64,000 nt of DNA from Octopus sinensis (GCF_006345805.1 NW_021832231.1:186001-250000); one strand, 5' to 3'. Numbered from the stretch's first letter, positions 1,951 to 36,639 are shown. Program-made: numbers and translations. Notes: generated by a model not told the origin, from the sequence alone.

Positions 1951-2228
1951 AACAGGCGGAACAAATCAAAAATGGATTCCGAGCAGAATATTAGAATAAA
2001 AACATTAAAAAATAGAATAAACCGCAGTAATCAAAGAATTAAATAAGAATAAAAAAGGCTAATAAATACGCAGAAACATGAACTGTACTTAAATTTCTAT
2101 TGTCTCAATTGTGGCTCATTGTCGTTTTAAATTTGGGTTAAACATTCTTTGTGTAAAATGATCGATGCGATTCGTAGCAACGTTATTAATATTGTTTCGA
2201 TATTTCTTTTAATCTGTGAACTCTAATC

Positions 2229-5200
2229 ATGGATCCCACAGGTACTGGGTCATCCTCACTCTCAGAACACATTGAGTGGACAGTTGACCAGAAAAGTACG
2301 TACATGAACGATTCAGAGTTCAAAAGTCGACTAAAACAACTACAAGTCTTCATCGACAACATTTCCTTAACTAATTTTGATGCCTCTCCAGCTCAGAAAA
2401 GACAAATTTTTTGTGGTTGAAGTTTTTAAAAGCTGAATAGCAGGAAACGTCCAATTTGAATTTTTTCAAAAAGCAGTAAACTCCATTTTTGAAGACGAGC
2501 TCGACATTCGTGGATTACGTAACTGCTTCCTAAAAATATTCACAACACCAGGACACAAACTTGACTGGACGGAGGTCCCTGAAATATAAATTTTAGCAGA
2601 TTTTTGGATCATTTGTCCCAGGAAATCGGATTGCCCTTAACAAATTCAACACTGGGGACACCGGACAGTCAAACCATAAGGCAATCTCCGGTAACATGAT
2701 CTGGTCAATCTTTCGAGATCTGAGCGCAGGAGACTTTGTCTGCTGTGTGAAATACTTTGAGCATCTGGAATACTACAGCACTGCCTCGATTTTGGGAATG
2801 GTGTGCATTTGGAACAAAAAAGTAGTTTTTCTAATAATTTGCAGTTCAGAAGAATAAACATGCTTATGACAAATGTCGTCAATGTTGATATAATCGAATA
2901 GAGTAAATACTGGACAGTGGGTTTGGGCTACGCTAAGGTCGGGAAGCGGGTTGTTCTCATAAACGAAAACGAACTGATCATCTGGGACTACAGAACTTCA
3001 GGGAATCAGAAAGTATCACACGTTAAATATTTCAGAACTACAGCATTCTCACGTGCACCAACAAACGAATCACGACCGCGGTGGTCGACAACTTGGACGA
3101 CGGGTCTGACGTTATCATTTTTGGTGACAGCGCGGGAAACATTGGAATTCTAAACTACCAGCAGTCCATGTTGTCTCGACAGCCAGAAATATCAAAAAAC
3201 TCCTCGATTTTGTTGTTCAATGTCTGCGATTCGGTCAAGTAGTGCAAGTCAAGTTCTTTTAGAAACTACCCTCAGTTCCACAGAGCTTCCGTCGAATCAG
3301 TTTTTGGTTTATGTGCACGTGCACTAGATATTATACGATTCCACACTAAAATTGTTAATCTCATCGTCAGCCACTAATCGTGGTCAAATTGTTATCACAA
3401 AAATATCAGGAAAAGACGTGCTTAAGTACGTTTTTTCCCTGTAATGTTTAGACAACAATTCGTTATTATAAAAGAGACGAAATGTCTGGAAGTGACACAA
3501 GGGATGGTCATCGTAGGAGGAAAGGACAAGATAATACACGTGTGGACATCCTTCAACTTCAATACAAAACCGAGTTGTTTAAAAAATACATTTCTAGACA
3601 AATTGTACGGACACAGGACTTGTATCATCGATTTGAAGTCATGTGGAAAGCTGCTGGCCAGTTTGTCGACGAACGGAGTCATTTTTGTGTGGAGTCTGTC
3701 ATCCTTTGTCCTCATACAAGTACTTTTGGCGACTAACTCCAAAAGCAAGTCAAGCCAAACTCCCCCACGTTTCTAAACTGTCTTTGTTTGGCCAAAAATG
3801 AGCTTGTCGCAGGTCGTGTTGTCGTCTCACGGCTTAGCCTCGACGAAGCTCTTGTTTTGGAAGGTCAACAAACTTTCTCTGGACCGCCACAAAATAGTTC
3901 AATCGCATGAATTTCCGGTCATTGACGTATTCAATTTGTATACACAAATAGATGTTGATCGAAGGAATGACAGGCCAAATGATATCATACGACCAACATT
4001 CCAACATAAAAGTCATTTTTTGCTTTTTAAACAGATTTGGGACTTGATGAACATGGAAAAGACCAGCGAATTTGAGGCCAGCAGTTCCGGGCTTATCACC
4101 GCCTGTGAACTCGAGCCTGGCTCATTCACCGCCACGTTTGGATATCAGAATGGTACCCCGTCAGTCCAATTAAAACAGGCGCTTTGGAAGTCTGGGATTT
4201 GGCATTTAAACAAAAGTTCAAGTCATTTGTGCCCGTCGAAGGTCACTCAAACAAGATTTTGGCGTTAAAAACGTACATAGTGAGGAACAAGCTGTCGATT
4301 GTGACCCTGAACGACAGCAAGGCTGTCGACGTTTATGATGGATCAGTACTTTATTGACTAATTTGCAGAAGAGAGACAAAAAACTGAAATAACTTTGCTC
4401 AATTCATTCCAATTACCCCCGAGTGAAGGAAAGCCTAATGTGGTCACTTTTTTCAAAAAAATGGTAATCATCGGGGACAATCGGGGGAATGTCGAAATAT
4501 ATAATTTGAACACATTGGAGAGAACTGCCCAAAAGTAAACTAATTAGATTAAATTTTAAGCAAAATCAGTCAAAAAGACGCGGCCATCGTTAAAATGGTC
4601 ATTATCGGGGCCAACAACTGGTAAGTACAGCCATTTTCTACCTCTAGTAGACCACGTAGCATAGTCAAGGAAAGTAAGGTAACATAATTACTAATTTAAG
4701 AAATTAAATAAAAGAATGGACTCAGTAAAACACAATCCAAGTTCAAGATATTTGTAAAAATACAACTCAGATAACAAATTCATTCTGAATGTGGTTTCCG
4801 CCCTATCCGATGGTACAATCGTAGTCTGGGAAGTCAAGGTTTCCTGTTTTCCACCAATATCCAGACCAACAAAATAGTAGAACTGAGCCTTCTCATGAAG
4901 AAGACATCCGTCGTGTCCAGTCTGGCCTACTCAAGCCAATACTGCGCTCTTTTGGCTGGAAACGAGGGTTGTGTCTGACATGTGAATAACAAGATGGTTA
5001 TATAATCAGAATAACCACAAATTTGAAAGATTCGGTGAACGAAAAGGACGTCGACTGGCAGTCATGGCAGGGCCACTCAGGGAGAATCAACTCGATCAGA
5101 ATCACCAAAGAGACGTTTCTGACCTGCAGTGAAGACACCTCAATAAGGTTGGGGATTGTCAGACTGGCAGAGTGTGGGATATAAAGACCAACAACTTTCT

Positions 5201-5647
5201 CCAACTACTGTCTAACAAACCGAGTTTTGTCGGGATTAATAAACGGAAAAAGTTTGTTTTTGAAGACATTCCCAACAAAGTTTGAGTTTTTTTGAATTAC
5301 GAGGACGCCGAAATACACCAGAAAAATTCAATTATAGCTCAGAACACGGGCGTAGTGGAGTATTCGGTTAAGTTCACTTTTTAGGAAAATTTCGTGTTTA
5401 CAAAACGACTTTGTCCTACCAAACATTCTCAAGCATAATTATTTTTGCAATATAGGAAACACTGCTGTGGGTCATACGTCTCGATTGAGTAAAAAACTCG
5501 AATTGGAGACTGTTTTTGGCTCGATCAAAGTCCATAAGGTATTTTAAAGTCAATATTGAGCAGATCGAATCGGTTCCTTCTGCAAGAATAGTGGCAAAGA
5601 AAATTTCAAAAGAATCTCGGACTTTGGATGGCCACAATACAATTTAA
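2229..5647 (+). CDS. Multi-exon WD40-repeat protein, WDR49/WDY/EFCAB8-like (tentative family)
   Basis: Tiny GT-AG introns (e.g. 2296-2316, 2822-2844, 3013-3035, 4621-4647). WD-like blades VIVGGKDKIIHVW, LYGHRTCIIDL..LASLSTNGVIFVW, IFGDSAGNI, VQSHEFPV. N-terminal FLKI..LDWTE resembles the family EF-hand-like segment. The 3' end is approximate. Confidence 0.7.
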
Positions 5648-5868
5648 CAAGTTAAAAATACTTTATTAAAATTAATCATTTTTTTAATTAAATTTAATGA
5701 TTTTGATTAATTTTTCGATTATAGTTGATATAATTTTTGGATTACATTATTTTGATTTTTGCTAATTCAAATATTTAGGAAAAACAATAAGTTAAAATAT
5801 ATTTAAAAATAAAAAAGAATATAAAAATATAATTATCAATATAAAAAATAAAATTTAAAGACAAATAT

Positions 5869-6279
5869 AGTATGTAGTCTTGTGTTACTTCTATTTTTTA
5901 GTGAATGATCAGGACAAGGTCCGATTCCGTGCTGAATTAGAGTTCGTGCAGTGCCTTTCAAGTCCTAAATATTTAAATTGTACAAAATCTATTTCCAACG
6001 TGTAGTAATTGCCCAAAAAGGATATTTTCAAGACACCTGCTTTATAAACTATTTATCTTACCTACAGTACTGGAAGCAACCCAAATATTCATATTTCATA
6101 AAGTATGTCACGTGACTAAGCCCAGATATCCCACATCACTATATTTCCTCGACTTACTTCAAGACCCCCAATTCCGCGAAAGAATAGCTCGATGCGAGGT
6201 AGCCCAGAACATAGAAGACCAACTGATTCTCCACTGGCAGAACTACCAGCGGAAACGACAAGGGAAGCTGAGTCAGTGA
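5869..6279 (+). CDS. MED31: Mediator subunit 31 (SOH1)
   Basis: Removing introns 5870-5901, 5980-6005 and 6103-6125 gives MNDQDKVRFRAELEFVQCLSSPKYLNLIAQKGYFQDTCFINYLSYLQYWKQPKYSYFIKYPTSLYFLDLLQDPQFRERIARCEVAQNIEDQLILHWQNYQRKR.., colinear with MED31. Confidence 0.95.
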
Positions 6280-8048
6280 AGGGAGAGGAGCTCTTTGAGG
6301 GCCTCTCCACCTCCTGGGACGTCGTGAATCTCCTCGGCCATTTATTCAAATGCAAACAAAAATCAGTCCGCCAACAACTGGCTTTGAAGCTTCAGGAGTT
6401 TCCCCAAAGTGAGGAGTATTTGGCACAGCTGTTGAGCATGCACGTGACTAACTACGATGGGGGGTTCCTCGAGGAATATCTCCTCACTCGTTGTCGGTCT
6501 TCGGTAAGATTTGCAGTCTCGTGCTCGCTCATGTTGAAGGCTCTTTCTGTTGGGTATGACGCGACATGTCGTCCTTTGGAGAGATATTTATGGAAGGCAA
6601 AGAAGAGTCACAGGAGGACATATTCTGATAGGGAGAGAGGAGGGTTTGATTCGGGCTGTCGATGTCCGGTCACCAAGTCTCAGTGGGTGGACGCATTTGC
6701 TCGAGGGGAGGTCGAATATGGGAGAGGGACATCACACTGTCGCTGTCAAATCAACTTGATTCGTCCACAAGTCGCATTTCTCTCGCAGTTGACTGCCCTT
6801 GGATGTGAGCAGTGTCTTTTCCATGAAAGACTGAATGTGCTTGTCAACCAACTCAAATGTCTCAATTCGAGTCTGCCTGCGCCTGTGTGGCTTCCCTTTT
6901 CCACAGAACACGTCATTCTGAATATTTGTGAGAATGAGACAGTCATTCTCAATTCCAAGCCCAATGCCCCCTTCCTCGTATATGTGGAGGCACTGCAGCG
7001 TCAGGCAGAGGCTACCATCTCCACCTACTCAAAGTCCGAGTCCAATCTCCAGTCCAACTCGGTCTATTGTCAGCGTGTGTCTGCCGCCTCTATTCGCCAC
7101 CGATTACAGCATTCCGTGACTCCGCTGAGTGTGTCTTCCTCCAAGGATTCCACGGCGATGGCCCCCGAGTGTTGGAATGTGAAGAAGGCGAGAATACGGG
7201 CGACATCTTTGTTCGGAGACCTGCCCAATTGGAGTTTGTGGCCAGTCATCGTCAAACGGGGGGATGATTTGAGACAGGAAGTGATGATATCTCAGGTTGG
7301 GTGGATTGTGATATTAGAGGTGATTGGACTACTCCAGGAGAGTTGGGAGGTCGAGAATGTGAGGTTGTGGGTTCGTCCTGTTCGTGTTTATGTGACTGGG
7401 TCACTTCGGGGACTGATTGAGTATATCCCCGACACTGCCTCACTCCATCAAATCAAAAAGCGAGGATTTCCCCGACTCAATCAGTATTTTGTGGAACAGT
7501 TCGGGTTGGAGACGTCTGAGAAATATTTATGTGCGAGGGAGAACTTTGTGAGGAGTTGTGCGGGCTATTGTGTGGTGTGTTATCTCCTGCAAGTCAAGGA
7601 CAGGCACAACGGGAACATTCTTCTGGACGCAGAGGGTCATATGCTGCATATTGACTTTGCATTTGTAATGTCCTCTTCTCCTGGGAGGAATTTGGGGTTT
7701 GAGGTGTCGCCCTTCAAGTTGACTGACGAGTTTGTGGAGGTGATGGGAGGGCTCGAGTCGGATATGTTCAGATTCTTCAAGAGTCTCATTTTCCAGGGAC
7801 TTGTGGCAGCCAGGAAGCACGTGGAGAGGATTATCACATTGATGGAGATAATGCAAGTTGGGAATCCTACTCTCCCCTGTTTTAAGAACAGCACATGTTC
7901 TATTCAGTCCGTCAGAGAGAGGTTTCATGTCTCGTGGAAGGAAGACCAGTTGGAGAGGTTCACTGAGGAGATGGTTAATTCATCCTTGCGCTCGATCACT
8001 ACTCGTTTGTATGACAGTTATCAGTACTTTTCCAATGGAATTTTTTAA
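6192..8048 (+). CDS. PI4KB: Phosphatidylinositol 4-kinase III beta
   Basis: 618-aa ORF with helical domain YLAQLLSMH and kinase motifs VIVKRGDDLRQE, YLLQVKDRHNGNILL, HIDF, FEVSPFKLT, and C-terminal RLYDSYQYFSNGIF. Probable in-frame intron at 7296-7319. Start codon uncertain. Confidence 0.93.
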   Translation: MRGSPEHRRPTDSPLAELPAETTREAESVKGEELFEGLSTSWDVVNLLGHLFKCKQKSVRQQLALKLQEFPQSEEYLAQLLSMHVTNYDGGFLEEYLLTRCRSSVRFAVSCSLMLKALSVGYDATCRPLERYLWKAKKSHRRTYSDRERGGFDSGCRCPVTKSQWVDAFARGEVEYGRGTSHCRCQINLIRPQVAFLSQLTALGCEQCLFHERLNVLVNQLKCLNSSLPAPVWLPFSTEHVILNICENETVILNSKPNAPFLVYVEALQRQAEATISTYSKSESNLQSNSVYCQRVSAASIRHRLQHSVTPLSVSSSKDSTAMAPECWNVKKARIRATSLFGDLPNWSLWPVIVKRGDDLRQEVMISQVGWIVILEVIGLLQESWEVENVRLWVRPVRVYVTGSLRGLIEYIPDTASLHQIKKRGFPRLNQYFVEQFGLETSEKYLCARENFVRSCAGYCVVCYLLQVKDRHNGNILLDAEGHMLHIDFAFVMSSSPGRNLGFEVSPFKLTDEFVEVMGGLESDMFRFFKSLIFQGLVAARKHVERIITLMEIMQVGNPTLPCFKNSTCSIQSVRERFHVSWKEDQLERFTEEMVNSSLRSITTRLYDSYQYFSNGIF

Positions 8049-8177
8049 TGTTTTTCAATCAATTGATAATCTTTTTTGGTTTCATCTGCCATTGATAGAT
8101 TGGCTATTTATTGTGGTCATCATTTCACACATATCTGCATGTGGTTATTCAAATATTTCCGTCAGATCAGTTGACTA

Positions 8178-10111
8178 CAGTAAAACCTCTGGTGCTCGCC
8201 ACCTCTGTTACTCGCCACCTCTATTGCTCGCCAAATATTTTCCAAAAAATTAAAAATTTCTAGTAAATTTTGATAAATATTCTATTGCTCGCCATTTTCT
8301 AAATCTCGCCATTGATTTTTAAAAATATTTTTTTTGGTTAAATTATTTTTTATATAAAATATTTCAACCATGCTAAATTCAACATGTGTAAGAGCACAAG
8401 ATTGTCTTTTAATGAAAAACGTCGCATTATTGCGTACATGGAGGAGATCAAAAGTCTCACGATGGACCGTATAGCTTACATTTTTTCTTCTGTTTTTGAA
8501 GAAATAAATATCTCGCAGGGCTGTAAACGATTTTAGACTTGGAAAAGAGAAAATAATGTTTACTGATCCTATTTTCTCCAATTAGAAGAGATTATCTAAC
8601 TTAACTTATTCTGTTATTGACACCGAACTATTAACTTGGATGGAATACATTGAGCTTAGAAGGCAGTTTCTGGACGATAATTCAATTTTGTTGAAAGCAA
8701 AGAACATTGCTAATATTTATGGAATTAAAGAGTTTAAAGCCAGTAATGGATGGCTAAGCAAGTTCAAGATACGGAACAACTTAAAATTGAGGACTTTACA
8801 TGGAGAATCAGGATCTACTGCAGTTGATCAGAAACAAGAAATTGATGCATTTACTTCTTTGATCTCTGCAAAGATTTAACAATATAATACTGCAAACATT
8901 TATAACGCTGATGAAACTGGGATTTTTTTACAAATCTATCCCTTCAAAAAGTGTTTGTCAGAAGGTTCGATATGGACATAAAATCCTTAAAGAACGGTTT
9001 AATTTTAATTTATTTTTTTAGATTTTCTTTGTTGCTATGCTCAAATATAACTGGGACAGACAAAAATTCCACTTATGATTGGAAAGTTCTAGAAACCTCG
9101 CTGCTTTAAAAAATTTAAAGTCGAAAATTTTGTCGATTACTGTCATTCACCAAAAGCATGGATGACAAGTAAAATTTTTAACGAATGGCTTTTAACATGG
9201 GATAGGCATCTAAAAAAACGAAAAATTCTTTTAGTTGTGGATCGATGCTCATCCCATAAACTTTACGCTGATTTAGAGTCAATTGAAGTTCTTTACCTAC
9301 CTTCGAAGACTACAACAATTCTACAACCAATGGATCAAGGAATCATTAGATCCTTCAAAGGACATTTTAATAAACTTAAATTTGAGTTTATGTTAGAAAA
9401 AATTGAAAATGGAGAAAATCCACTGGAAGCTCATACAAAATTAACCTTAAAAGACGGTCTTCTTTTTACATATTTTGCCTGGAAAAAAGTAACGACCAAA
9501 ACAAGTACAAATTGTTTCGGACATTCAAAATGGATCGAATGTGAAAATCAACTCGAAAGACCAACCGTTGAAATTGATAATTATGATCAAATGGTAAATA
9601 TCTTGAAAATATTGGACCCGGTGGATAAAGATGATTTTATTAATCATGAATTTACCGAAATAGATGAAATTGAAGATTACCTTAATATTGCTGGAGATTC
9701 TTTCCCACAAAAATATGACGATGAAGATACTCATAATGACGAATCTCATGTGAATTCAAAAGAGGCTTTGAAAATGTTGAAAAGAATAGTCATTCTTTTA
9801 TCAAAATGAAAATTTTGATAAACATCCGTTGGAACTAATCGACACCGTTATTAGAATTATGGCTGAATTAAAAAAAACTATTAATGATTTTTTTAGTTAA
9901 TTTTTTCTTTTTAATTTCTTTCGATTCTCTTTGTTTCTTTGCTCAAATATGACTTGGAGGGCTCACTTATGAAAGGAAAGTATCGAAAACCGAGATGTTT
10001 TCAAAATTTCAAAGTCAAAAAATTTATTGATTATTTCTATTGCTCGCCAAATTCTATTGCTCGCCATTTTTTCTTTGGTCCCGAAAATGGCGAGCACCAG
10101 AGGTTTTACTG
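8178..10111 (+). mobile_element. pogo/Tigger DNA transposon, full length, transposase disrupted
   Basis: Perfect TIRs CAGTAAAACCTCTGGTGCTCGCCA with TA on both sides. CENP-B HTH (FKASNGWLSKFK), IYNADETG, LLVVDRCSSH, LQPMDQGII; stops and frameshifts. Confidence 0.95.
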
Positions 10112-10429
10112 TATATTTAGAAAGAATATTGAGCTTACAGTCAATTTTATTAGAAAACTATTTCTGAAATAATGATAGGATAAAAGATTGTTATTCTTGA
10201 CAATATAGTCACATTCTATTTTTTGTTCAAATCAATATTATAAATTTGTAATTACATTATGACCTCTATTTGAGCACCTATTTAAAAAAATTCCCCCAAA
10301 ACAGAGATTTACCCAAAAATGGAGGTTTGGCATTTCCTTTAAATTTATCCACAGTTTAATAATTTTATTTTTATAACAAAAACAGATATAGTTAAAAGTT
10401 AACACAGTCATCCATCCGAAGTGGACCCC

Positions 10430-22760: not shown

Positions 22761-22830
22761 TATTGTTTATTATTATTTATTTTTTATTTATTAACTCCAA
22801 GACACCGAGAAATAGGTCAGAACTAACTAA

Positions 22831-25560
22831 TTAGGTGATCCCTGCCTCCAACAACAGCCGTACTTTCCTTACATGATGATCTTCTGATGAACCCGACCGT
22901 AATCCGGAAAAGCCTTCCTTCCTTCTGCAGAGGAACTCAATTGGAGGGCATTTCTTTATAACGACCGAATTCCTCTGCATGTGCCACCTTTTCCTTGAGT
23001 GGGTTTCCCAGTTCCTTGCAGAAACGTAGGAAACCCTGTCCATTCTCTGCGTCGCCTCCTCGGAAGCAAGACTGCCAACTGAGGTGTCAGTGTGGAGCAT
23101 AATCTTCCTTCTGAGTGAGTTCAAACGTTCCGCTTTCGAACAAGCAATAGCAAACCTCCAGGCTGAGCAGGCATACTCAACCGTCGGGGCAATCACTTGT
23201 TGGTAGACTTTGCTGACACAATCTTTCAGGGGGAAGGGACTCTTCTTTAACAGAGCTTTCAAGACGTCCACTTCCGCAGACCTTTAGCTAGGCCTCCTCT
23301 ACGTGACTTGAGAACGTCATTAAGGAGTCGAAAACCACGCCAAGGATCTTCTGGGTACGCGAAGAGGGAATAGGTTTGTCTCCAATGAATAGTTCCAGCC
23401 CATTCTTGAATCTTCTGTCAGTAGTAAAGAGGGTGAATTGGGATTTGGATGCAGACACACACAACATGTTTGCAGATAGCCAATCACATACACGGTTGAG
23501 GTGTGACTGGACCATTGCGACAGCCACAGAAGGAGATTTATCTCTTGCAGCGATAATCAGGTCGTCCGCATAGGATAAGAACATTATGTCTGGGTCATTA
23601 GTAGTGGGTAGGTCATGTAGAAATAGGTTAAAAAGGAGAGGAGATAAGGGGAGCCTTGTGGGACACCATTGGGCAGTAGTCTTGATCTTGAAGTAGTATT
23701 GTCGATACGGACCCTTCCGCGTCGGCCAGTTAAGAAATTTTCCAACCACAGTTTGATGTTCGGATGTAAGTTCGAATCAAATATCTTCCGCGTTAGGAGT
23801 TTCCTCGGGACAGAATCAAAAGCCTTTTGTATATCAATAGATACTAAGGCCGTCCGTAGGTGTGTTCCCATGTTAAAGCCCTCAGTGATAAATGGGAGAC
23901 AGAACACAAGTGGGTCGTTGTGGAACGGTCTGGTCTAAAACCGTGCTGGAATTCTGGCAGTTGTAGGACAGGAGAGATTCGCATTAATACGAGCTTTTCC
24001 AGTACTTTCGATAAGATACAAGTTATTGAGATTGGGCGGTATGAAGAGGGGGCATCCTTTGGTTTCCCAGGCTTTAGGATTGGCGTAATTAGGGAGTTTT
24101 TCCATATATTAGGTATCGTACGTAAGTTGATGGAGTCGTTATATAGTCTTGATAGTACGGTCCGTGCCCGGGGTCCCAGGTGTTTGAAGTGAATAGCACA
24201 AATCCCGTCGGGGCCACAAGACGGTTGGGACGTAGGGATTTAATAGCCTTGTCAACATCATCTGGTGTGAAGAAGGTGGAATACGGTTCTGGTCGTGGTC
24301 CGTGCCGTTCAGTATGTGGAGTGCGAGAGAAGTTTTTATGGCTGATCGATACATAATACTTCATAATCTTGTTTGCAAGTTTGCGAGCGGGTTCCGAGGA
24401 ATTGTGGGCAACAGCCTCAGATTCTCTGTCCTCCTCGGCGATAAGGCAATTGATCCTTCTTAGCGTTTTCCAAAAGGTGGCGCAGGAATTTCTGTGACAT
24501 AAACGTCCAACGAGACGACTCCACTTGAGTCCGTGATTAGTGCGGATCAGTTCAGAAATTTTGATATTCAAAGGACGTATGATATGGTATGAGTCATTGG
24601 ACTTGCTTTTCTTGAGGGCGTCCCGTTCTTATAAGTGATAGGATTTCTGAGGATAGTCTTGGATGAACTTCTTATATGAAGCGACAGGTATAATAATTTA
24701 TCGGCTTGCAGAATGATAGTAGACAGGATCTTGGCCGTCCTTTCCACCGTGCAATTTTCCATAGAGAGGTCGAGCAGGCAGTCGTCCACATACAGCCCGA
24801 ACCATGCCAGTTAGCTTTCGAGTAATTTTTGAACTTCGTAGGGCGGCGCGTTGGACAGAAAGGCCTCTAAGTGTCAGTACAATGGGGTTATGGTCGCTCG
24901 AGGAGCCATAACGAACATTCCACGAGATATATCCAGCCAAGGATGGAGTGCAAAGAGACAGGTCCGGGGATGTTGGGCTGTCTCTTCTACGGGTTGGTGT
25001 CCTTGTATGAGCGTATGGATCGTTTAGGATAGTCAACTTATTGAGTACGGAAGGATATATTCGCCACGAATGTCGGCCGGTTGAGACCGGAGCCAGAGCG
25101 GAATGCTTGGCATTTAGGTCGCCGCATAGCAGCAAGTCCTTCAGTCCGCCGAGTTTCAATAAGTTGGGTGTGTATTTTGAGATAAAAGAGGTCGTCGAGC
25201 TTTGCGGTGGGACATATACATTGCATAATGTAAAATGTCTTGAGGGTGAGAGAGGAACTTCTATGGAGATTTGTTCAAGGATAGGATCGTCTTGGCACAG
25301 GAGGAGATGAATGTTGTAACGTCGGTGAACACAAGCCCTCCTTGACAATGTCAATAGTCCTCCACCAAGACATCTCGTCCGGTCCTTTCGCAGTACACTG
25401 TAGCCAGGGAACCGAGGTGTTGGATGACGCGGAGAGTTTAGACTCCTTGATGAGGGCATGTCCACTTTTAATCGGGCTAGAAGGGAGCGTACTCCAGGAC
25501 CTTGCTTGGTACTCCATTGATATTCCATTGTAGGATAGTCGAGATCGGGCCCCGGATTTA
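22831..25560 (-). mobile_element. Ingi/Vingi-like APE-RT non-LTR retrotransposon (frameshifted)
   Basis: APE motifs TILQWNING, CGDLNAKH, SPDLSL, SSDHNPI; RT motifs DIQKAFDSV, GVPQGS, LSYADDL, KILGVVFD. Confidence 0.88.
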
Positions 25561-28500
25561 CTGACAATGGCATCCCACGTTAATACTATAAGTACTATAT
25601 TCACTTTTGCTTTGTGGATTAAAGCCAATTCACTTGCTAAGAGATCATACTTGTGGGATTTTTCGACTTCTACTTTTTTAAGAATTTGCTGCGAAGTTAT
25701 TCCAATTTCGATTAGTGTAATCGTATTCTTAATTTTATCCCACACGAAAATGTCGGGCTTGTTGTTATGAACGTGTGTGTCAGTATTTATAGTAGTATCG
25801 ACTCTGATCTCAACTGCTTCATTTGCAACTATAGACTGGACTGAATGGGTCTTCAATCTTTTTGACCTTTTTATTCCATACTGTCTGCAGAGATGTAAGT
25901 GAATACATCTCACTACTTCATTATGCCGTCGTAAGTAATCGCTGTTTAGCATTCGCCCACACCTGGTAGCTAGATGGTCAACAGTTTTTTTCGCAGAGCT
26001 GCAATGTTTGCAATTCGTTTCTCCTGCTCCAAAGAGGAAATTGCGGTCTTGTAGTAAACAGAAGGATGCTTCTGATCTCGGAGAGATGTTTCCATATGTT
26101 AACCACGCGGAGGACTCCGTAACATCGACATTAGTATCTTCCAAACAATTAAAGAGGCAGAGGTTTTTTCCTGATTTCTGCAATTAGGTATTCATTCTGT
26201 AATCCTTGCAGTGCCTTCACATTGAGACTTCCATGGTCTCCAATTTTGTATTTTCGAGTGATAAATTCTACGATTGTGGTCATATGTGTTTTCTTTGACT
26301 TCATGACCCGCAGAATTCCCGCTCTTCTCAAACAGTAATGAGACTTCTTTTCAAGGTCTCCTAAAAATTGGAGGAGCATTCGTTCGCTTTTTGAGTTATA
26401 GATACGAGTCCTCTCCAAGACGATTCCTGGGTAGGTATAATCTTTCTTTGTTCGCCGGCTTCAGGTGAATCTATTCTGTATTAGAATCCTCTGATTTTTT
26501 TATCAATAACCTCAAATTCGGTTGGGTCGATATCATAAGTCCAATATAATAATTATAAAGAGACAATGCATGTTCATTGATGGATTTGAATAGATTCCCT
26601 GAGTTAAGTTTTGTAGTGGCCAGATTGTTAATTCTTTTCTTCATCTCATCAAAGATTGATTTTAGCACATCGCTTTTCAGTATGTTACTCATTTTATCTT
26701 CGAGCACTCCCAGGTATCGGTAGCTATCAATTCCATCAAGTAGTTTTGCCTCGGAAGCCAAGCACTCCACGTTAGTAGCTGACTTTTCCACATTTTTCTC
26801 TAGTCCAGCAGCCTCGAAGAAAAGATTAACATCATTCATCATTTTTATCAACGTATCTTCTTTCTTCGAGAATATTTTTAAGTCATCCATGAAAAGTAGA
26901 TGGTTTGTTGAGTATGTAAGTGATCCCTGGCCAGAGTTGTCCATATTCACTTTTGGGTACTTCACATTTAATAATCTGCTTAACGGATCCATCAATAGCA
27001 CAAAGATCTGAGGGGATAACCAGTCTTCTTGTAAGATTCCCTTTCGTAATTTAAGTTCTCCAATTTCTTTTTTGTCAAATATCAATTTAAATTTCCATCT
27101 TTTCACAAATTTTTGATGAAATCTTTATCCAATTTGGAAGTCCAGAAGAGTCAAGAATCTTAAAGAAAGTCGTGGTCCCTGTGTCGAAAGCTTTTCTAAC
27201 ATCGATCCATGCAGAGGCCAAATTATTTCCGTTTTGTTGATTGACAGACTGATTAAATATTGCTTGCTCTTTGGCTCCTTGACACATTCTTTTCGTTCCC
27301 AACTGATTATCACTAACGAGATGCATCGATGTAGTCTGATAATTTCCTGTTCACACATTTCGTAGTCAGTTTATATAAATTTGGCATGCATGTAATCGGT
27401 CTTAGGTCTTTAGGAGAGTTGCAAACTTCTTTCTTAGGAATAAGATAGGTAATTCCTGAATAGAACCATTCGGCTGGACAGTATTTCCCGTTTATAATCT
27501 TTATAATTTCTTTGCACAGAAATTCATGAATCGAAGTAAATTTCTTTATAAAGAAATTATATACTCCATCACACCCAGCTGCTCTCCAGTTTGGTGATAC
27601 ATTAATCTCATCGATAATGAATTCTTTAGTGAAATCTGCATGTGTGGTTTCAGCACCAGTAGATCTGTTATTTAACGTAAATGTTTCTTCATTCCTTTCA
27701 CGTTCTTTCCATACTTCTTTCCAAAAAGATAAACAATCATCCTCATCAAATTCGAATTTAACATTTTTCTTATCCCCACTCAAAGTTCTGTAAAAATATC
27801 TTCTGTTAAGTTCAAAACACCAATTTTGTTTTCTGAACTCCTTTCTTGACTCGTGGATTCTGAGTTTTTTTCCAAAATTTGTATTTCATCCTGAATGTAA
27901 GACGAAATTCTTTCAAATTCTCCCTTCTTAGACTTTTTGTATCTGTACTCACGAAGAATTTCTCTAATTTCATCATCAAATTTCTGGTTTGTTTTCTGTA
28001 AGTCGAATGAATTAATTTGATCCAACTTCTTATTCAGATTAATCAGTTTTTCAATAATGCGCTCACTCCAGTTGCTTTTTCTTTGAGTCGACATTGTCAG
28101 GTATTCATAAGTTAATTGCCCCGCATATACAAAATCTGTAATGTCATCTAAATTTTTTGGATAATTGGATTTGGAAAATTCCCAGATTGCTGAATTAATC
28201 CCATTTAAAATTTCCTTCTTTAGTAACTGATAAGGCACTTTTCTTGTTGGCTTTCGTAAATCACGTGGGATTGATTTTACTTTCTCAATTTGGGAACAAA
28301 ATTCCTCATAACATTTTCTAAAATTGGAGACTTCAGTTTTTGGGTCATTTGCATCAGATAATTTGTCCATGGAAATTTTAGCCTTTTTCCGTTGACTTTC
28401 AATAACATCTTTATGTTAGAAACTGACTTGGTAGAAGAGAACTTTTCATTGAAAGCTTTTGTTATAAGAGGCCATCCTCCATACGGTATTCGATCGAATT

Positions 28501-28730
28501 TTGATTTAATAGCTTGAACTGCTTCATGGATCCATTCCAGTTTGTCATCCGTTTGTACTTGATCCATAATTGCTCGTAAAGATAGTAGTCTTGTTCGAAA
28601 AACAGGTTCTATAACACAGGGATGAGGTTCGATGTCGATTTCTTGAGCTTCATGCTGCCCCCTGACCACTTTCTCTACGTTAGTAGTGTTTTCTCTATCA
28701 ATATTCTTAGCGATAATGCCATTTCTCTCA
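25561..28730 (-). mobile_element. R4/NeSL-like RLE non-LTR retrotransposon, near full length, 3' end deleted
   Basis: PNWRAAGCDG, TYLIPKK..LRPITC, WIDVRKAFD, LLFMDDLKIF, YRYLGV, CCHC knuckle CKHC..DHLATRC, KPDIFVWD..LIEIG. Confidence 0.9.
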
Positions 28731-29654
28731 CTAGTAGGGTACCATCCCTCGAACCCGTAGGTAAGCACTGGGTCGAAGCACGTTTTATAAAACAAATAAA
28801 ACGTTTCCGGACTAAAGTGGAAGTGAATTATGAATTTGATATTTTATGACTGTGTCAGAGAAAAACCCACCCCTGGCATTCGAGATCTGGAATATTAAGT
28901 TGTATTTAATCATTATTTAGCAAATTAACTCCAAGATGACATTGAAAAGACTGCATCACAATTAACAGAGCTTGGTTCACTCTCTTTGGTTCGTACAGAT
29001 CTTTTGTCATACTATATTGGTTTAAGTAAGTTCCACAGTCATCTGCCACCAATTTACTAAATAATTAAGATTAATTTATTCAAGTTTAATGCAACTTGGG
29101 TCACTCGTCTTCTGAAAAAGTTAAATTTGTTGACTTAAATAGCAATATCAAAAAAATGACAAATGGGAAATTAATTTTCTTAAAAATAAAATGAATAACA
29201 ACGTCATTAAGAAATGCCAAATGGCATAAAAAAAGCTCATTCGAAACGTAAAGAAAAAAAGTAAATTTACAAAAAATAACACTCATAGATGAATTAAAAC
29301 ACAAAACTGATTACCAACCCGTAATAGCGACCACTCCAATGCAGTTAACCATTATTGAACTCCAAAAACAAACCCGTAAACAGATGACCGTACAGGAGAA
29401 ACTCCTGCAAGTGACAGTTTTGACGTTCTGTCCCAATCAGAGGCCAACTACTTAGTCCTAAACCAGAAATTACTTGACAGAGCTAATAATCGAAAATCCA
29501 CCAACATATGCCCCTTTAGAACACAGCCTTAGTCTTGAATCTATCAAAGCTCTAATTCAAAGAAAGCCTTACAAACCTTGTGTTAAAACCACATTCAACA
29601 AGCGCGTTGTACTTTCCTCAATTATATTAGTAGTATAATTTGTATGTTTATATT

Positions 29655-31829: not shown

Positions 31830-33395
31830 TACACCCATCTGGATTGAGTCCAACTCCTCGACAGTCCCTCTCTCTCCCCATTAACAGGCACATCCCCACT
31901 ACGAGGAATGGAGGATACACATATTGGTGAGGCACACCGTAACAGTCATAAAGTGAGTAATCAGGGGACAGTCGACCCATTAGTGGCAGGGTCGTACATC
32001 CAGTAGGGATCGGAAGGGAAAGTAAAACAGTCAGGAATTATCCCCGCAATCGGGGCCATTGGAATCGTCGACACTGATCCATCCGCTTGGAAGAATGAGG
32101 GAATCTTGTAGAAACCATTGGAATTTCCCCCCCAAAAACATTGAATTGTCGAAATAAAGAGACCCTGAGTGCCGAGACTGCTGTTTGTCACGTCGTTCCT
32201 TCTTGTTTTGACATCGAGCGAAGGACACCTCAATTTCCCGACTGCCCACAAACTTCTTATCCATTTTGCCGAGTGCCTTCTCTGCTGCCTTTCGGTCAAC
32301 ATAATGAACGAATAAATATTAGTAAAACGATTTATCCGCATAACACTGCCAAATCTGCTGAAAATATCCGAATATTCAGCATCAGACATGTCCCGTCAAT
32401 ATTCCTCACAAACAACACCTTGACATCCTCCTCCCCGTTCTCATCATTCACCACAACCAGTCAACCCCCACCAACTGGTCGAACGGCCTCACTCGCCCAG
32501 TAAACAACTTCTTTTGCTGGAGGAAGCATTCTTGTGTCGATCAAAGTGGATTGTACAACAACCAGGCCCCGTCAACTCCACATTCAGCACTCCATCCAAC
32601 AACTTATTGAACTCCCCATCAACGTCACTCGCCTCCTTATTCATAGGCAGATTGGACAAGGACAATTTGAGGTTAGGGATGGAAGGATTCACTCGTATCT
32701 TTCATTCCCGCCTTCAATTCCACTCCGTTGTATTTCTTGACTGCAATGTCCACTGCGTCGTCCTCCACGAAGTCACAAAACAGAACCCCTTGTTCCGTCC
32801 AGTGGCGCATCCACCATCATTCGGAGGTCGTAGATGGTGCCACACTTCTCCATCATGGGGATCAACGTGTCCTCACACAACCGAGTAGGGGATCGACCCA
32901 ATGTAGATCTCGTGTCCGTTGGCGGCCGGGATGTCCGTCATGTTGGGAGGCGGGCCATATTTCCGCTGGCCGGACGTGCGTTCGTAGGGGTAGCCAGTCC
33001 GTCGGATGATGGCCTCCATCTTTTGCTCGTCGGGTTTGAACACCTCCGTGTTGCTCAGACTGACGTTGTTCTTTCTCCTGTCCCGCACAGAGCCGATGGA
33101 CGTGCACAGGTGGGCACTCTTGTTCGAGATTGCGAGAGGTCGCTGGCTTCGAAACAGGCCGAAATGTCCTCCGCGGTCCCTCTGACTTAGACTTTTGAAG
33201 GCGTCGATCGCCCCGAGCGTCGAATTCGGAGAATTTCAGCCTCCCTGAGTTAAAAAAGGGCTGAAAGACATCAGAAACTCCTCGGAGACTCCCAGTCGTG
33301 CAGACTTTTGGCTCCGAGTAGTTTTGTGTGGTGGGGGGCGAGGAACGTTGTTTATTGGTAGTTTTGTCGAATGCATTGGATTGAGACTTAACCAT
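31830..33395 (-). CDS. HNRNPR/SYNCRIP: hnRNP R/Q (SYNCRIP)-family three-RRM protein; apparent frameshifts
   Basis: FDAR-AIDAF, SDLS..NKSAHLC, PDEQKMEAIIRRTGY..TSGQRKYGPP, EIYIGSIP, IYDLRMMVD..RGSVFVTF, RFGSVMR..YSFI..IEVSFAR. The 3' end is approximate. Confidence 0.88.
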
Positions 33396-33466
33396 CAGCC
33401 ACACGTGCGACAATCCCAAGGTCAGAAAATACAATTGTGCTGTGGTGTGATTAACGGAAACCTCAG

Positions 33467-36400
33467 ATGGTAAATAAAGAACGAAGCGAAGACGAAGTAC
33501 GAGGAACAAAGCCACTGAGGACAACTCGGGCATGTCTCTTTTGTGGGCAGTCGAATATCAGGAAACTTGGAATTAACTGCACGCCATGTGAATCATTCGC
33601 CCATTTGGGCTGCATAAAAAATGAGCAAAGCCTGCGCCGAGACGCTGTCAGCTGGCAGTGCCCCCCGTGTATTGGAAACGAGGTCCCCAGGCGGGAAACA
33701 ACAGCTCAGCCAAACTTTACATCACCACATACTGACCACATTTCTCTTGAAGATCTCGAACCTCCGGAAAGCCAGGAAAATCCCAGTAAAAATCCAAAAG
33801 GAGCACGTATTGCCGCAGCAACGTGCCTTTCAGACCTCATTGACAACGCACTGTCCTCTGACAGCTGGGATCCTGGCTTAAACTTATATGCTTCGCACCT
33901 GTTGCACTCGGAACACCTACAACGGAATCTGATAACCAGAGTAAAGAAACAAACCCCCGGCTAAACTTAACCGGGAAACTGAAGGAAGAATATTGAATTT
34001 CGGCAGTCATAGCATACACGCAATACTTGAACAGCCACTTATTGCCAATGCGGTCAAAACCAGAGGAGCATTCACCAAAGATGCCCCCAACAAACTGAAG
34101 GAGCGAGTGAATCGGAACTTCTGGAGGGCGATGTGCGGGCAGCCCTACGGGTTATCACGTCCGATGACACCGTGCTGTCTAGCACCCCCCCGAGGTCTCT
34201 GAATACCTTAACTCAGAAGCACCCAAGTGCACGAGTGATTATGTAAAGTTCTCGATCCTGAAGGAACCCAAGAGATTATGATTACCGAATCAGAAGTGCG
34301 GCGCGGAATCGCTTCTTTTGCCCGCCAGCAGCAGCGGAGGCTTGGATGGGTTTACGCCCCGGCCATATCAAGGACCTAACGTCCACCTACACCTCGAAGC
34401 AGGACGCTGTCTTGTTAAATCGATCACGGCCTAATAAGGAAAATGGTGAATGGCGACATCCCGGAGTATGCCAGAGAATTGCTCTTCTCCGCAAGGCTAC
34501 TCGCGTTCAAAAAACCCAACGGAGGAATCCGCCCATTGCGGTCGGAAACTATTTCAGAAGACTCGCAGCGAAGATTGCTTCGACCCTCGTGAGCCGCCCA
34601 CTCGGTGCGAGTTCTTCCCGAACAAATGGGTGTTAGTATCCAGAACGGATGTGAGGCAGCGGTTCATTGCAGCAAGGCGTTTCTTCACACAGAAGAATAC
34701 TGCAAACGAATGCATTGGAATCAAATTGGACATAACCAATGCATTCAATTCTCTCAGAAGAAGACTCCATTATGGAAACGTGTTGAAGAGGGCTCCCATG
34801 CTTTTCCCTCTTGTTAAATTGTCATACGGAGAAGATACGTCTCTGGTTTTTGATGATGAAATCATTAATCAAAAACTGGTGTCCAGCAGGGAGATCCGCT
34901 CGGACCCCTCTTATTTGCCCTGACAATTGATGATGTTGTGAGATCAATTGACGCACAACTAAATCTCTGGTATCTCGACGATGCACAATTGGAGGATCAT
35001 TCGAGGAAACATACAACTCTTTACGTCAAGCACTTCCCGCATTAAAACACTTGGGATTGGACATCAATATTACAATCAGAGTTAATAAATGTCTCATACT
35101 CAAACACCGACTTTCTCTCTATCAAGGAGGTTTTCAACGAACTGCTTCCCGGGATCCCGACTGTGCCAGTTGATAACTATATTTCCTTAAATGTCCACTC
35201 AGTGAAGACGAACTCAGGAACCATCTACTTTCTAAAAATGAAGAATTATCTCGCCTCGCAAAGATTGTCCATGCCTCGACTCTCACACATCCTTCTTCCT
35301 GATGAGAAACAACATCGGACTACCCAAGCTTTTATACCTACCTACTCGAAGTTCACCACACGAACTCCACACAACACTTACTTTGCGATAGCCACGACAT
35401 TACGACAGTCTACTTTCGATAACAAATCTCTCAACAAACTGTTGAGTCACTAATCAACGTCCGCTTCGACGAACTCGGTGGAAGCAATGTAAGCTTCCCT
35501 CTGGATTTGGGGGTGTCGGTCTAAGATCGGGCGCTGGAGGTCGCGTACCCGGCATATCTTTCGTCTCTCTCAAGCTGCAAACATTTGACACGGCAAGTCC
35601 TTCGTCACACTATTGGACTTCGCTGGAATGAGTCATTTGATAAGCTTGCCGGGATTGGAACGGTCAGGACTCAAAATCCCCGAAGACACAACGAAACAAG
35701 GAACTGGGATAACATTGTCTGCTCCAAAATTTCAGAGGGCTTAAAAAAGAAGCAAATCAACATCGTCTTGCTTGCTGGTGTCAGCCTCAAGTGGAGGGAG
35801 CGGAGCATGGCTTGTGTAATCCTTGCCCAAATCTCGGGACTTTTTTGGACGACGATTCTTTGAGGATTGGAATCGGACAAAGACTTGGACTAGACGTTTG
35901 CCAGGAGCACCGATGCCGCTGCGGAAAACGGTCGATGCGAAGGGATTGCACCCGCTATCCTGCAGGAGATCCGCCGGAAGAGGACCACGTCACGCCGCTC
36001 TGAACGACGTGATCGTCAGAGCTCTGAAGGCTGCAGGCTTCCCAGCACAGCTTGAACCAGTGGGTCTCGATCGAGGTGATGGAAAGAGACCTGACGGATG
36101 ACTCTTTTCCCTTTCAACTCCGGACGATCTTTTGTCTGGGACGCAACTTGCGTCGATACTTACTCAAGCACGAATCTCCTTAAATCGTTCAGACACCTGG
36201 AGCAGCTGCCTCAATCGCGGAAAACCTTAAAACCAAAAAATTCCTTCCTCGGGACCGCTACAGATTCACCCCTGTTGCGGCTGAGTCATCAGGAGCAGTT
36301 GGCCCAGCGACTGCCGAGTTCTTGCGCGAACTCGGAAGAATGCTCGCCACAAAGAAGAATGATCCTCGTGAAGGAGTATGGCTAAGACAAAGGATCGGAA

Positions 36401-36480
36401 TAGCCATACTCCGAGGAACTCGCTTTCCATACAGGCAGCGGGCTTCCTCAATTGATTTCTCAAATCAATCTCTTCTCTTT
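33467..36480 (+). mobile_element. Near full-length CRE-clade non-LTR retrotransposon with N-terminal PHD finger
   Basis: PHD CLFC-x11-CTPC-x4-HLGC-x13-WQCPPC; RT KPNGGIRPIAVG, KLDITNAFNS, LWYLDDA; CCHC CRCG..HPLSC; [23 protein letters not shown]. Frameshifted. Confidence 0.92.
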
Positions 36481-36639
36481 CGATATAATAACTTTATTTC
36501 TCGAATTGACCACAAAAACACGTGGACCCAAATGGCCAATTTCAGAGGAGTCACTGTACCTTCGAAATAATTGTATGATTAGATTGATAATGCCTTTTAG
36601 GTTGTATTCTTTCTTGAAACATTCCAGTCCGCTGGTTAT

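Follow-up and report, generated by a model that had tools for sequence, protein, structure and literature searches.

A candidate coding overlap between MED31 and PI4KB on a probable dicyemid contig of the Octopus sinensis assembly

Where does translation of a gene begin when its conserved domain opens almost directly behind the stop codon of the gene before it? This question is raised by a window of 64,000 nucleotides (nt) from the Octopus sinensis assembly (GCF_006345805.1, NW_021832231.1:186001-250000; the window is the whole stretch that was analysed, and all positions are counted from its first letter), in which a MED31 gene is followed on the same strand by a PI4KB gene. The zero-gap juxtaposition of the conserved domains of MED31 and PI4KB is a plain sequence fact: the MED31 stop codon and the first invariant PI4KB residues lie only 12 nt apart, too little to accommodate a promoter, a 3' untranslated region (UTR) or a spacer, and whichever start is used, some unusual mechanism is needed. 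An earlier note had proposed that PI4KB begins inside the MED31 coding sequence, and this was the most likely of the readings that we weighed: we lean towards a PI4KB start at ATG 6192, in the last exon of MED31 but in another frame, with 88 nt that would be read by both genes.

Arrangement of MED31 and PI4KB

The upstream gene was identified as MED31 by its match to Pfam SOH1/Med31 (E=1.4e-36), and its spliced coding sequence gives a protein of 109 amino acids that aligns end to end with other MED31 proteins. Its four exons and three introns, together with the elements found just upstream of them and within exon 2, are as follows:

5820-5845, plus strand: two TATAAA motifs (at 5820 and 5840, from a hexamer scan) in the AT-rich spacer (12-16% GC) just 5' of MED31.
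About 5850-5869, plus strand: MED31 exon 1, a short 5' UTR whose last base is the A of the start codon; its 3' boundary is firm and its 5' boundary is guessed.
5870-5901, plus strand: MED31 intron 1 (32 nt), with GTATGT as donor, a tail rich in pyrimidines and TTTTAG as acceptor; it splits the start codon as A/TG.
5902-5979, plus strand: MED31 exon 2, from the spliced translation and the Pfam Med31 match.
5905-5940, plus strand: a second AUG and a mini open reading frame (mini-ORF) of 11 codons in the +1 frame, opened through an AUGAAUG overlap and closed by TAG 5938-5940, from the ATG map of the spliced mRNA.
5980-6005, plus strand: MED31 intron 2 (26 nt), GTACAA...GTGTAG, whose removal restores the ortholog-like YLN-L-IAQKGYF.
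6006-6102, plus strand: MED31 exon 3, from the splicing model and the ortholog alignment.
6103-6125, plus strand: MED31 intron 3 (23 nt), GTATGT...CCCAG, whose removal restores FIK-YPTSLYFLDLLQ; it holds TAA 6117, which closes the PI4KB frame upstream.
6126-6279, plus strand: MED31 last exon, with stop TGA 6277-6279 and frame position mod 3 = 1.

Exon 1 ends in ...AAATATA and exon 2 opens with TGAATGAT, and the joined mRNA reads AUG AAU GAU (MNDQDKVRF). Frame translation gave no other in-frame ATG for MED31 after the stop at 5842/5868, the protein has no internal methionine, and the size of intron 1 is typical for this genome. Because the start codon is split by an intron, gene finders that look for a contiguous ATG would miss or truncate MED31. 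At the other end of the gene, the C-terminal tail of this MED31 is the shortest among eight aligned sequences, as if it had been truncated by the neighbour gene. The TATAAA pair at 5820 and 5840 is a candidate core promoter for a MED31/PI4KB unit.

The downstream gene was read as follows:

6192-8048, plus strand: PI4KB ORF of 618 codons (1857 nt) in the mod 0 frame, with stop TAA 8046-8048.
6339-6536, plus strand: PI4KB/PIK1 accessory domain (Pfam PF21245), residues 50-115.
7242-7853, plus strand: PI3/PI4-kinase catalytic domain (Pfam), residues 351-554.
7296-7319, plus strand: hidden PI4KB intron of 24 nt (GTTGGG...TAGAG), in frame and stop-free, whose GT and AG ends coincide exactly with an insertion.

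In an alignment with five animal PI4KBs, the first invariant residues of this protein, L-F-E, are coded by 6291-6299. The earlier note had described PI4KB-like homology from about 6291 with no ATG between it and a MED31 stop at 6277-6279, and this is what we found: a TGA stands at 6277-6279 and no ATG lies in the interval. ATGs within 6100-6500 occur at 6105, 6192, 6350, 6438 and 6457, and the only ones in the PI4KB frame downstream of TAA 6117 are those at 6192 and 6438. ATG 6438, which had been placed inside the conserved domain, indeed encodes residue 83 and falls midway along the Pfam PIK domain; no in-frame ATG but 6192 leaves this domain whole, and the coordinates of 6192 as the sole usable upstream ATG, in the last MED31 exon and in another frame with an 88-nt overlap, were confirmed. 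If 7296-7319 were retained, the protein would carry eight extra residues (VGWIVILE) that are missing in all five aligned orthologs. Since 7296-7319 is a hidden intron, these residues of the kinase N-lobe region are spurious in the plain translation of the ORF and in the NCBI protein model P0001.

The window corresponds to positions 186001-250000 of VCDQ01002408.1, a 1,033,805-bp contig of the O. sinensis assembly GCA_006345805.1, with which it is identical over the 18.9 kb compared. This contig is most likely a dicyemid (Dicyema) contaminant in the octopus assembly, because its PI4KB is 35% identical to octopus PI4KB, its introns measure 22-32 nt and its GC content is 37%. The introns that we read have 32, 26 and 23 nt in MED31, 24 nt in PI4KB, and 26, 27, 22, 26, 26 and 23 nt in a WD40-repeat gene upstream. 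Among animals surveyed, ultra-short introns are known only from dicyemids and myxobolid myxozoans (PMC13644364, PMC6543705), and the median dicyemid intron is 27 nt long (PMC6543705). The Octopus sinensis kidney is home to Dicyema japonicum, whose genome has 36.7% GC and 49% repeats (PMC6736024); the window has 37.2% GC and consists mostly of transposon debris.

Protein searches returned a single public sequence at 100% identity to the 618-residue product, which is P0001, encoded on this contig and named 'phosphatidylinositol 4-kinase beta-like [Octopus sinensis]'. Among 5.8 billion clusters, the PI4KB that comes next is only 35% identical, as is that of Octopus bimaculoides, and a HMMER scan of 1.84 billion representatives gave nothing closer than 46-48% over the kinase domain. 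No dicyemid relatives appeared in word-indexed protein searches (with full-length PI4KB, MED31 and the PI4KB N-terminus) or in the HMMER scan, the nearest PI4KBs being 35-48% identical, and exact look-ups of the 618-residue and 536-residue products gave no match. Ciliates and apicomplexans also infect octopus; an origin of the contig from either was rejected, given that TAA and TGA both stop at conserved protein ends and that the best matches are metazoan for both proteins. The earlier note had called the overlap of two housekeeping genes rare among animals. The layout itself stands, but the usual expectations for animal gene structure do not apply, since the source is probably a dicyemid with introns of 22-32 nt.

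PI4KB has at most one or two introns in 1.86 kb, against three in 0.33 kb for MED31, and the published dicyemid average is 5-6 introns per gene. An intron-poor PI4KB that directly abuts MED31 would be in keeping with old retroposition or with a cDNA-mediated loss of introns. No poly(A) remnant is visible. A foreign or retrogene origin of PI4KB was considered and is unsupported: the GC content at its third codon positions (0.56) lies within the range of the WD40 exons (0.48-0.65) and the gene holds at least one intron, although its intron poverty is still notable.

A candidate PI4KB start inside MED31

The stretch on which the question turns is this one:

6192-6279, plus strand: candidate dual-coding stretch of 88 nt, read in the MED31 frame as ...RCEVAQNIEDQLILHWQNYQRKRQGKLSQ followed by the stop, and in the PI4KB frame as MRGSPEHRRPTDSPLAELPAETTREAESV.

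We give a slightly better than even chance to a PI4KB start at ATG 6192 with an overlap of 88 nt. In the mechanism that we propose, MED31 and PI4KB would form one tight transcription unit with no intergenic DNA, and PI4KB would be translated from ATG 6192, in the -1 frame of the last MED31 exon, such that the first 29 PI4KB codons, a predicted disordered tail, would be written over the last 29 MED31 codons and the stop. The likeliest route would be a single spliced MED31-PI4KB mRNA, on which some ribosomes would take the split AUG of MED31, in a context weak by the vertebrate rule (U at -3, A at +4), and others would skip it, or translate the 11-codon mini-ORF from AUGAAUG and then rescan. Whatever the frame, the first AUG that they would then meet, 235 nt downstream, is that of PI4KB at 6192, which might be reached by leaky scanning or by reinitiation. 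Alternatively, a transcription start inside MED31 would yield an mRNA for PI4KB only, with the same ATG 6192. Of the weight that we place on this ATG, about two thirds goes to one dicistronic mRNA and about one third to a second transcription start inside MED31.

The layout of AUG codons along the spliced mRNA suits such a route. Only three AUGs precede or open the PI4KB frame: the MED31 start, the one at +4 that opens the 11-codon ORF, and then 6192. This arrangement suits leaky scanning, and also reinitiation after a very short upstream ORF, in which the mini-ORF at 5905-5940 may play a role. An AUG-free run of 235 nt is found in about 3-4% of the segments sampled from this sequence and in 9% under a Markov model; the remainder of the PI4KB ORF contains none. 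The MED31 start context (AAAUAU-AUG-A) is weak by the vertebrate rule, which may not match the dicyemid consensus. We enumerated all GT..AG joins that could provide a different start: none of typical size (18-40 nt) does, and every join shorter than 87 nt retains ATG 6192. P0001 begins at the same ATG, which is a choice of the gene finder and no independent evidence.

Within the overlap, the MED31 frame is supported by homology: 55 of the 88 nt fall in the Pfam-covered part of MED31, which reaches Y99 at 6244-6246, and W96 is invariant. We then asked how often the PI4KB frame would be open by chance over this MED31 sequence, using synonymous recodings of the MED31 amino-acid sequence, in which the ATG falls at an Arg-Cys junction. 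Given the MED31 protein, the probability of both an ATG at 6192 and a stop-free PI4KB frame down to 6279 is 0.013-0.16, depending on the codon table (1.3% if codons are used as in PI4KB, 3.6% for pooled local codons, 6.6% for uniform usage and 12-16% if they are used as in MED31 or WD40). An upstream open frame with an ATG is thus only moderately improbable by chance.

Several observations weigh against a start at ATG 6192. The chance calculation depends strongly on the codon table, and MED31-like usage lifts the probability of the open frame to 0.28-0.38. Given a MED31 protein free of methionine, the absence of off-frame ATGs is likewise unremarkable (P=0.40). The context of ATG 6192 is itself weak, with U at -3 and C at +4. 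In the five-ortholog alignment, the PI4KB frame has no homology inside the overlap and homology starts at 6291 only; the 29-residue extension has no homolog in other PI4KBs and is predicted by AlphaFold2 to be disordered, with helix from residue 31. Short PI4KBs with only about 10 residues before the first helix exist elsewhere, P0234 and P0246 being examples, and the extension is therefore dispensable for the fold. The AG/TGAA at the MED31 stop, moreover, mirrors the split start of MED31 and opens a rival route that is taken up below. Finally, an argument for co-transcription from polyadenylation signals had to be dropped: no AATAAA or ATTAAA was found by the hexamer scan in 5848-8248, but by our estimate composition would lead one to expect only about 0.9, the poly(A) hexamers past the PI4KB stop fall inside a transposon and the WD40 neighbour also lacks them, which makes such hexamers uninformative in this genome.

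Structure prediction did not separate the two kinds of start. The AlphaFold2 model of the 618-residue ORF has a mean predicted local distance difference test score of 62; confidence is low over residues 1-39, residues 31-36 form the first predicted helix, and the model is compatible with either start, the extension being neither required nor excluded. RNA folding of 6150-6330 gave a minimum free energy equal to the shuffle mean (z=0.00), and it gave no sign that an internal ribosome entry site, a termination upstream ribosome-binding site or a frameshift stimulator lies in that region. The two starts would differ in their peptides: use of ATG 6192 would give the extension-specific MRGSPEHRRPTDSPLAELPAETTR and the tryptic peptides GSPEHR, RPTDSPLAELPAETTR and EAESVK, and a start at 6276 would give an N-terminal (acetyl-)MKGEELFEGLSTSWDVVNLLGHLFK.

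A more far-reaching version of the ATG 6192 reading would hold that MED31 and PI4KB, which are unrelated essential genes for a subunit of Mediator and a lipid kinase of the Golgi, are carried on an obligate single mRNA in dicyemids, with the 88-nt overlap, an AUG-free upstream cistron and the 11-codon mini-ORF as a 'launch' element. We hold this only tentatively, as a possibility that is more doubtful than the start itself.

Other starts for PI4KB

A different origin of the PI4KB start codon is suggested by one further element:

6275-6280, plus strand: AG/TGAA, a candidate alternative 3' splice site with the same hexamer as 5900-5905; it also holds an in-frame GTG (6276-6278) that overlaps the TGA.

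If the first exon were shared between the two genes, the donor at 5869/5870 would be spliced to the AG at 6275-6276 and would create a second split ATG at 6276-6278 (A/TG AAG GGA GAG GAG CTC, giving MKGEELFEG). The MED31 coding exons would be skipped, PI4KB would begin at the edge of its helical domain, only the TG of the TGA would be shared between the genes, and ATG 6192 would be coincidental. We regard this as unlikely, although it is the rival that survives best. MED31's own start is demonstrably split in the same way, and the acceptor contexts TTTTAG/TGAATG at 5900 and AGTCAG/TGAAGG at 6275 carry the same hexamer. The join is in frame, and the GT..AG enumeration lists it for every donor preceded by A; by our estimate, which was not computed, an in-frame A-GTG would arise by chance with a probability of about 0.05 a priori and of about 0.2-0.25 given the MED31 tail. 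The first helix of the AlphaFold2 model starts two residues past this codon, and short N-termini are known in other PI4KBs. The purine-rich acceptor is not disqualifying in a genome whose splice motifs are minimal, with only GT..AG (PMC13644364), and FlyBase lists gene pairs with a common promoter, first exon and start codon (PMC4528330). Size speaks against a shared exon: an intron of 407 nt would be required, while the ten introns read here measure 22-32 nt and 27 nt is the median in the literature. The acceptor at 5901 is nearer and would compete with the one at 6276. Two features would also have to be coincidences, namely the open frame with its ATG at 6192 (P about 0.04) and the lack of AUGs in the MED31 mRNA.

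The same six nucleotides would allow PI4KB to start without an AUG, from the GUG at 6276-6278 that overlaps the UGA as GUGA and that would be reached by scanning or by termination-reinitiation. This GTG is in frame, five codons ahead of the conserved L-F-E, and AGTGAA is also found at the MED31 start, where a GUG reading is formally possible too; yet a consensus intron of 32 nt that yields a true AUG explains the MED31 AGTGAA better. GUG is a poor initiator, and here an upstream AUG is available. Non-AUG starts are annotated in Drosophila where an AUG is unavailable (PMC4528330). Reinitiation past an ORF of 109 codons normally wants special RNA elements, but the region folds no better than shuffled sequence. 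Altogether, we consider a GUG start improbable.

The tight same-strand layout and the available AG/TG acceptor could also be read in terms of spliced-leader trans-splicing, in which a leader ending in ...A or ...AUG would be joined near 6276 and would resolve a polycistronic precursor. Some flatworm leaders do donate an AUG. The earlier note had named a trans-spliced transcript among its options, and we found no support for it: cleavage at the acceptor would leave MED31 without any 3' UTR, as its stop overlaps the only in-frame acceptor-plus-start, and the AG/TG of MED31 needs no leader, with a good cis donor 32 nt upstream. A scan against Rfam gave no match to a spliced-leader RNA in the window, and the dicyemid genome papers PMC6736024 and PMC6543705 make no mention of spliced-leader trans-splicing; in the literature searched, a single paper names both Dicyema and spliced leaders, and lack of a report would be no proof of absence. 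We give this explanation very little weight.

Equally improbable is that PI4KB starts at ATG 6438 (Met83) on a transcript of its own, with no overlap, or that an assembly or sequence error created the problem: the ATG is in frame, and the contig was assembled from long reads and belongs to a non-target organism, but a start there, as the earlier note had entertained, would lose residues 1-82, cut into the PIK domain (50-115) and delete the invariant L34, F35, E36, L51, K55, V59, L77 and Q79, and no single-base change in 6280-6290, where a hidden ATG had been suggested, makes an in-frame ATG. Local sequence errors are also made less likely by the intactness of both the ORF of 1857 nt and the MED31 gene with its three introns. 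Three ways of fusing MED31 to PI4KB were rejected as well. By splicing, the GTs in the overlap (at 6199, 6272 and 6276) allow only joins of 10-19 nt, which are too short, to bridge the frames; for a -1 frameshift, there is neither a slippery heptamer nor a structure; and exon skipping (6102^6277) leads to an early stop in the MED31 frame. Whatever weight remains beyond ATG 6192 and its rivals we assign to explanations outside this set.

Neighbouring sequence and comparison with known systems

The surroundings of the two genes contain one further element of note:

8176-10113, plus strand: pogo/Tc5-like DNA transposon, 128 nt past the PI4KB stop, bounded by perfect terminal inverted repeats of 26 nt (TACAGTAAAACCTCTGGTGCTCGCCA) and TA flanks, with HTH_Tnp_Tc5 and DDE_1 ORFs.

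This transposon looks recent, since its terminal inverted repeats are perfect and flanked by TA and it lies 128 nt from the PI4KB stop; related short repeats of the core of the terminal inverted repeat, TTGCTCGCCA, are present at 8217-8299 and 10036-10070. In P0001 (670 amino acids; window 7900-8880), the conserved PI4KB C-terminus (VRERFHVSW...YFSNGIF) is dropped and the model is spliced into the HTH domain of the transposon. P0001 is a chimeric mis-annotation.

Upstream of MED31, a multi-exon WD40-repeat gene lies on the plus strand at about 2200-5283, with introns of 22-27 nt. Its donors are GTAAAC, GTAAGT, GTAACA, GTTTCC, GTTGTG and GTTGGG and its acceptors AAG, TAG and CAG; only GT..AG and the length of these introns look conserved. 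Further along the window, GC-richer blocks at 22800-28800 (minus strand) and 32000-36500 hold fragments of non-long-terminal-repeat retrotransposon ORFs (reverse transcriptase/endonuclease-like, recognised by eye), which are apparently nested and decayed. ORF fragments with the look of an RNA-recognition motif (...IYIGSIPYS...) at 31961-32389 on the minus strand suggest another host gene. Rfam and tRNA scans of the window gave no matches. A gene prediction by dynamic programming on codon usage and introns was discarded, as it chained spurious introns and missed MED31.

The rules of dicyemid gene expression are almost unexplored, with introns of 22-32 nt, minimal splice signals and split start codons, and MED31-PI4KB would be a simple, testable case of two cistrons that share out the ribosomes with no spliced leader involved. 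If the ATG 6192 reading is true, the locus would offer a clear instance, in an animal, of coding nucleotides shared by two conserved housekeeping genes, probably on one mRNA. If the obligate-mRNA version is true, it would be the first polycistronic dual-coding housekeeping pair described in the phylum, and a hint that the extreme genome remodelling in parasites of about 30 cells reaches the choice of translation start. Whatever the mechanism, the Octopus sinensis assembly includes a contig of 1.03 Mb that most likely belongs to a parasite, with a model that is named as an octopus protein and fused to a transposon, and it can mislead cephalopod comparisons.

No comparable dicyemid gene pair turned up in the literature searched. 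Among the closest parallels are the dicistronic mRNAs of Drosophila, of which 159 pairs are known, or 2.5% of gene models (PMC4528330). [quoted passage not shown] Unlike MED31-PI4KB, which is known here from sequence alone, they are backed by cDNA or RNA-seq, and in MED31-PI4KB the downstream start would lie 88 nt inside the upstream coding sequence rather than after it.

[quoted passage not shown] Here, the upstream ORF has 109 codons and a start context that is weak by the vertebrate rule, and past the mini-ORF the first AUG is the downstream start itself. In the algae, which are another lineage and where the cases have been tested experimentally, stops typically lie between the ORFs, whereas MED31 and PI4KB would overlap.

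The FlyBase pairs with a shared first exon match the rival reading, with one 5' exon serving two coding bodies that here would share the first base of the start codon. They differ in that MED31-PI4KB would need an intron of 407 nt among introns of 22-32 nt, with a junction that is predicted only. The ChAT/VAChT cholinergic locus is another gene pair with a common promoter and first exon. Dual coding on the same strand is also known from INK4a/ARF, from GNAS XLas/ALEX and from viruses, where one product in the overlap is a disordered, poorly conserved tail; those overlaps are long and lie within one locus or gene family, whereas MED31 and PI4KB are unrelated housekeeping genes that would share 88 nt at most. 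Spliced-leader operons (nematodes, flatworms, Oikopleura and Ciona) similarly consist of tightly packed, co-transcribed genes on the same strand, but ahead of the acceptor that would be used here, MED31 lacks both a 3' UTR and a poly(A) signal. MED31-PI4KB would thus likely add a new phylum to those with dicistronic or overlapping gene pairs, its oddity being a downstream start that would lie inside the conserved coding region of the upstream gene.

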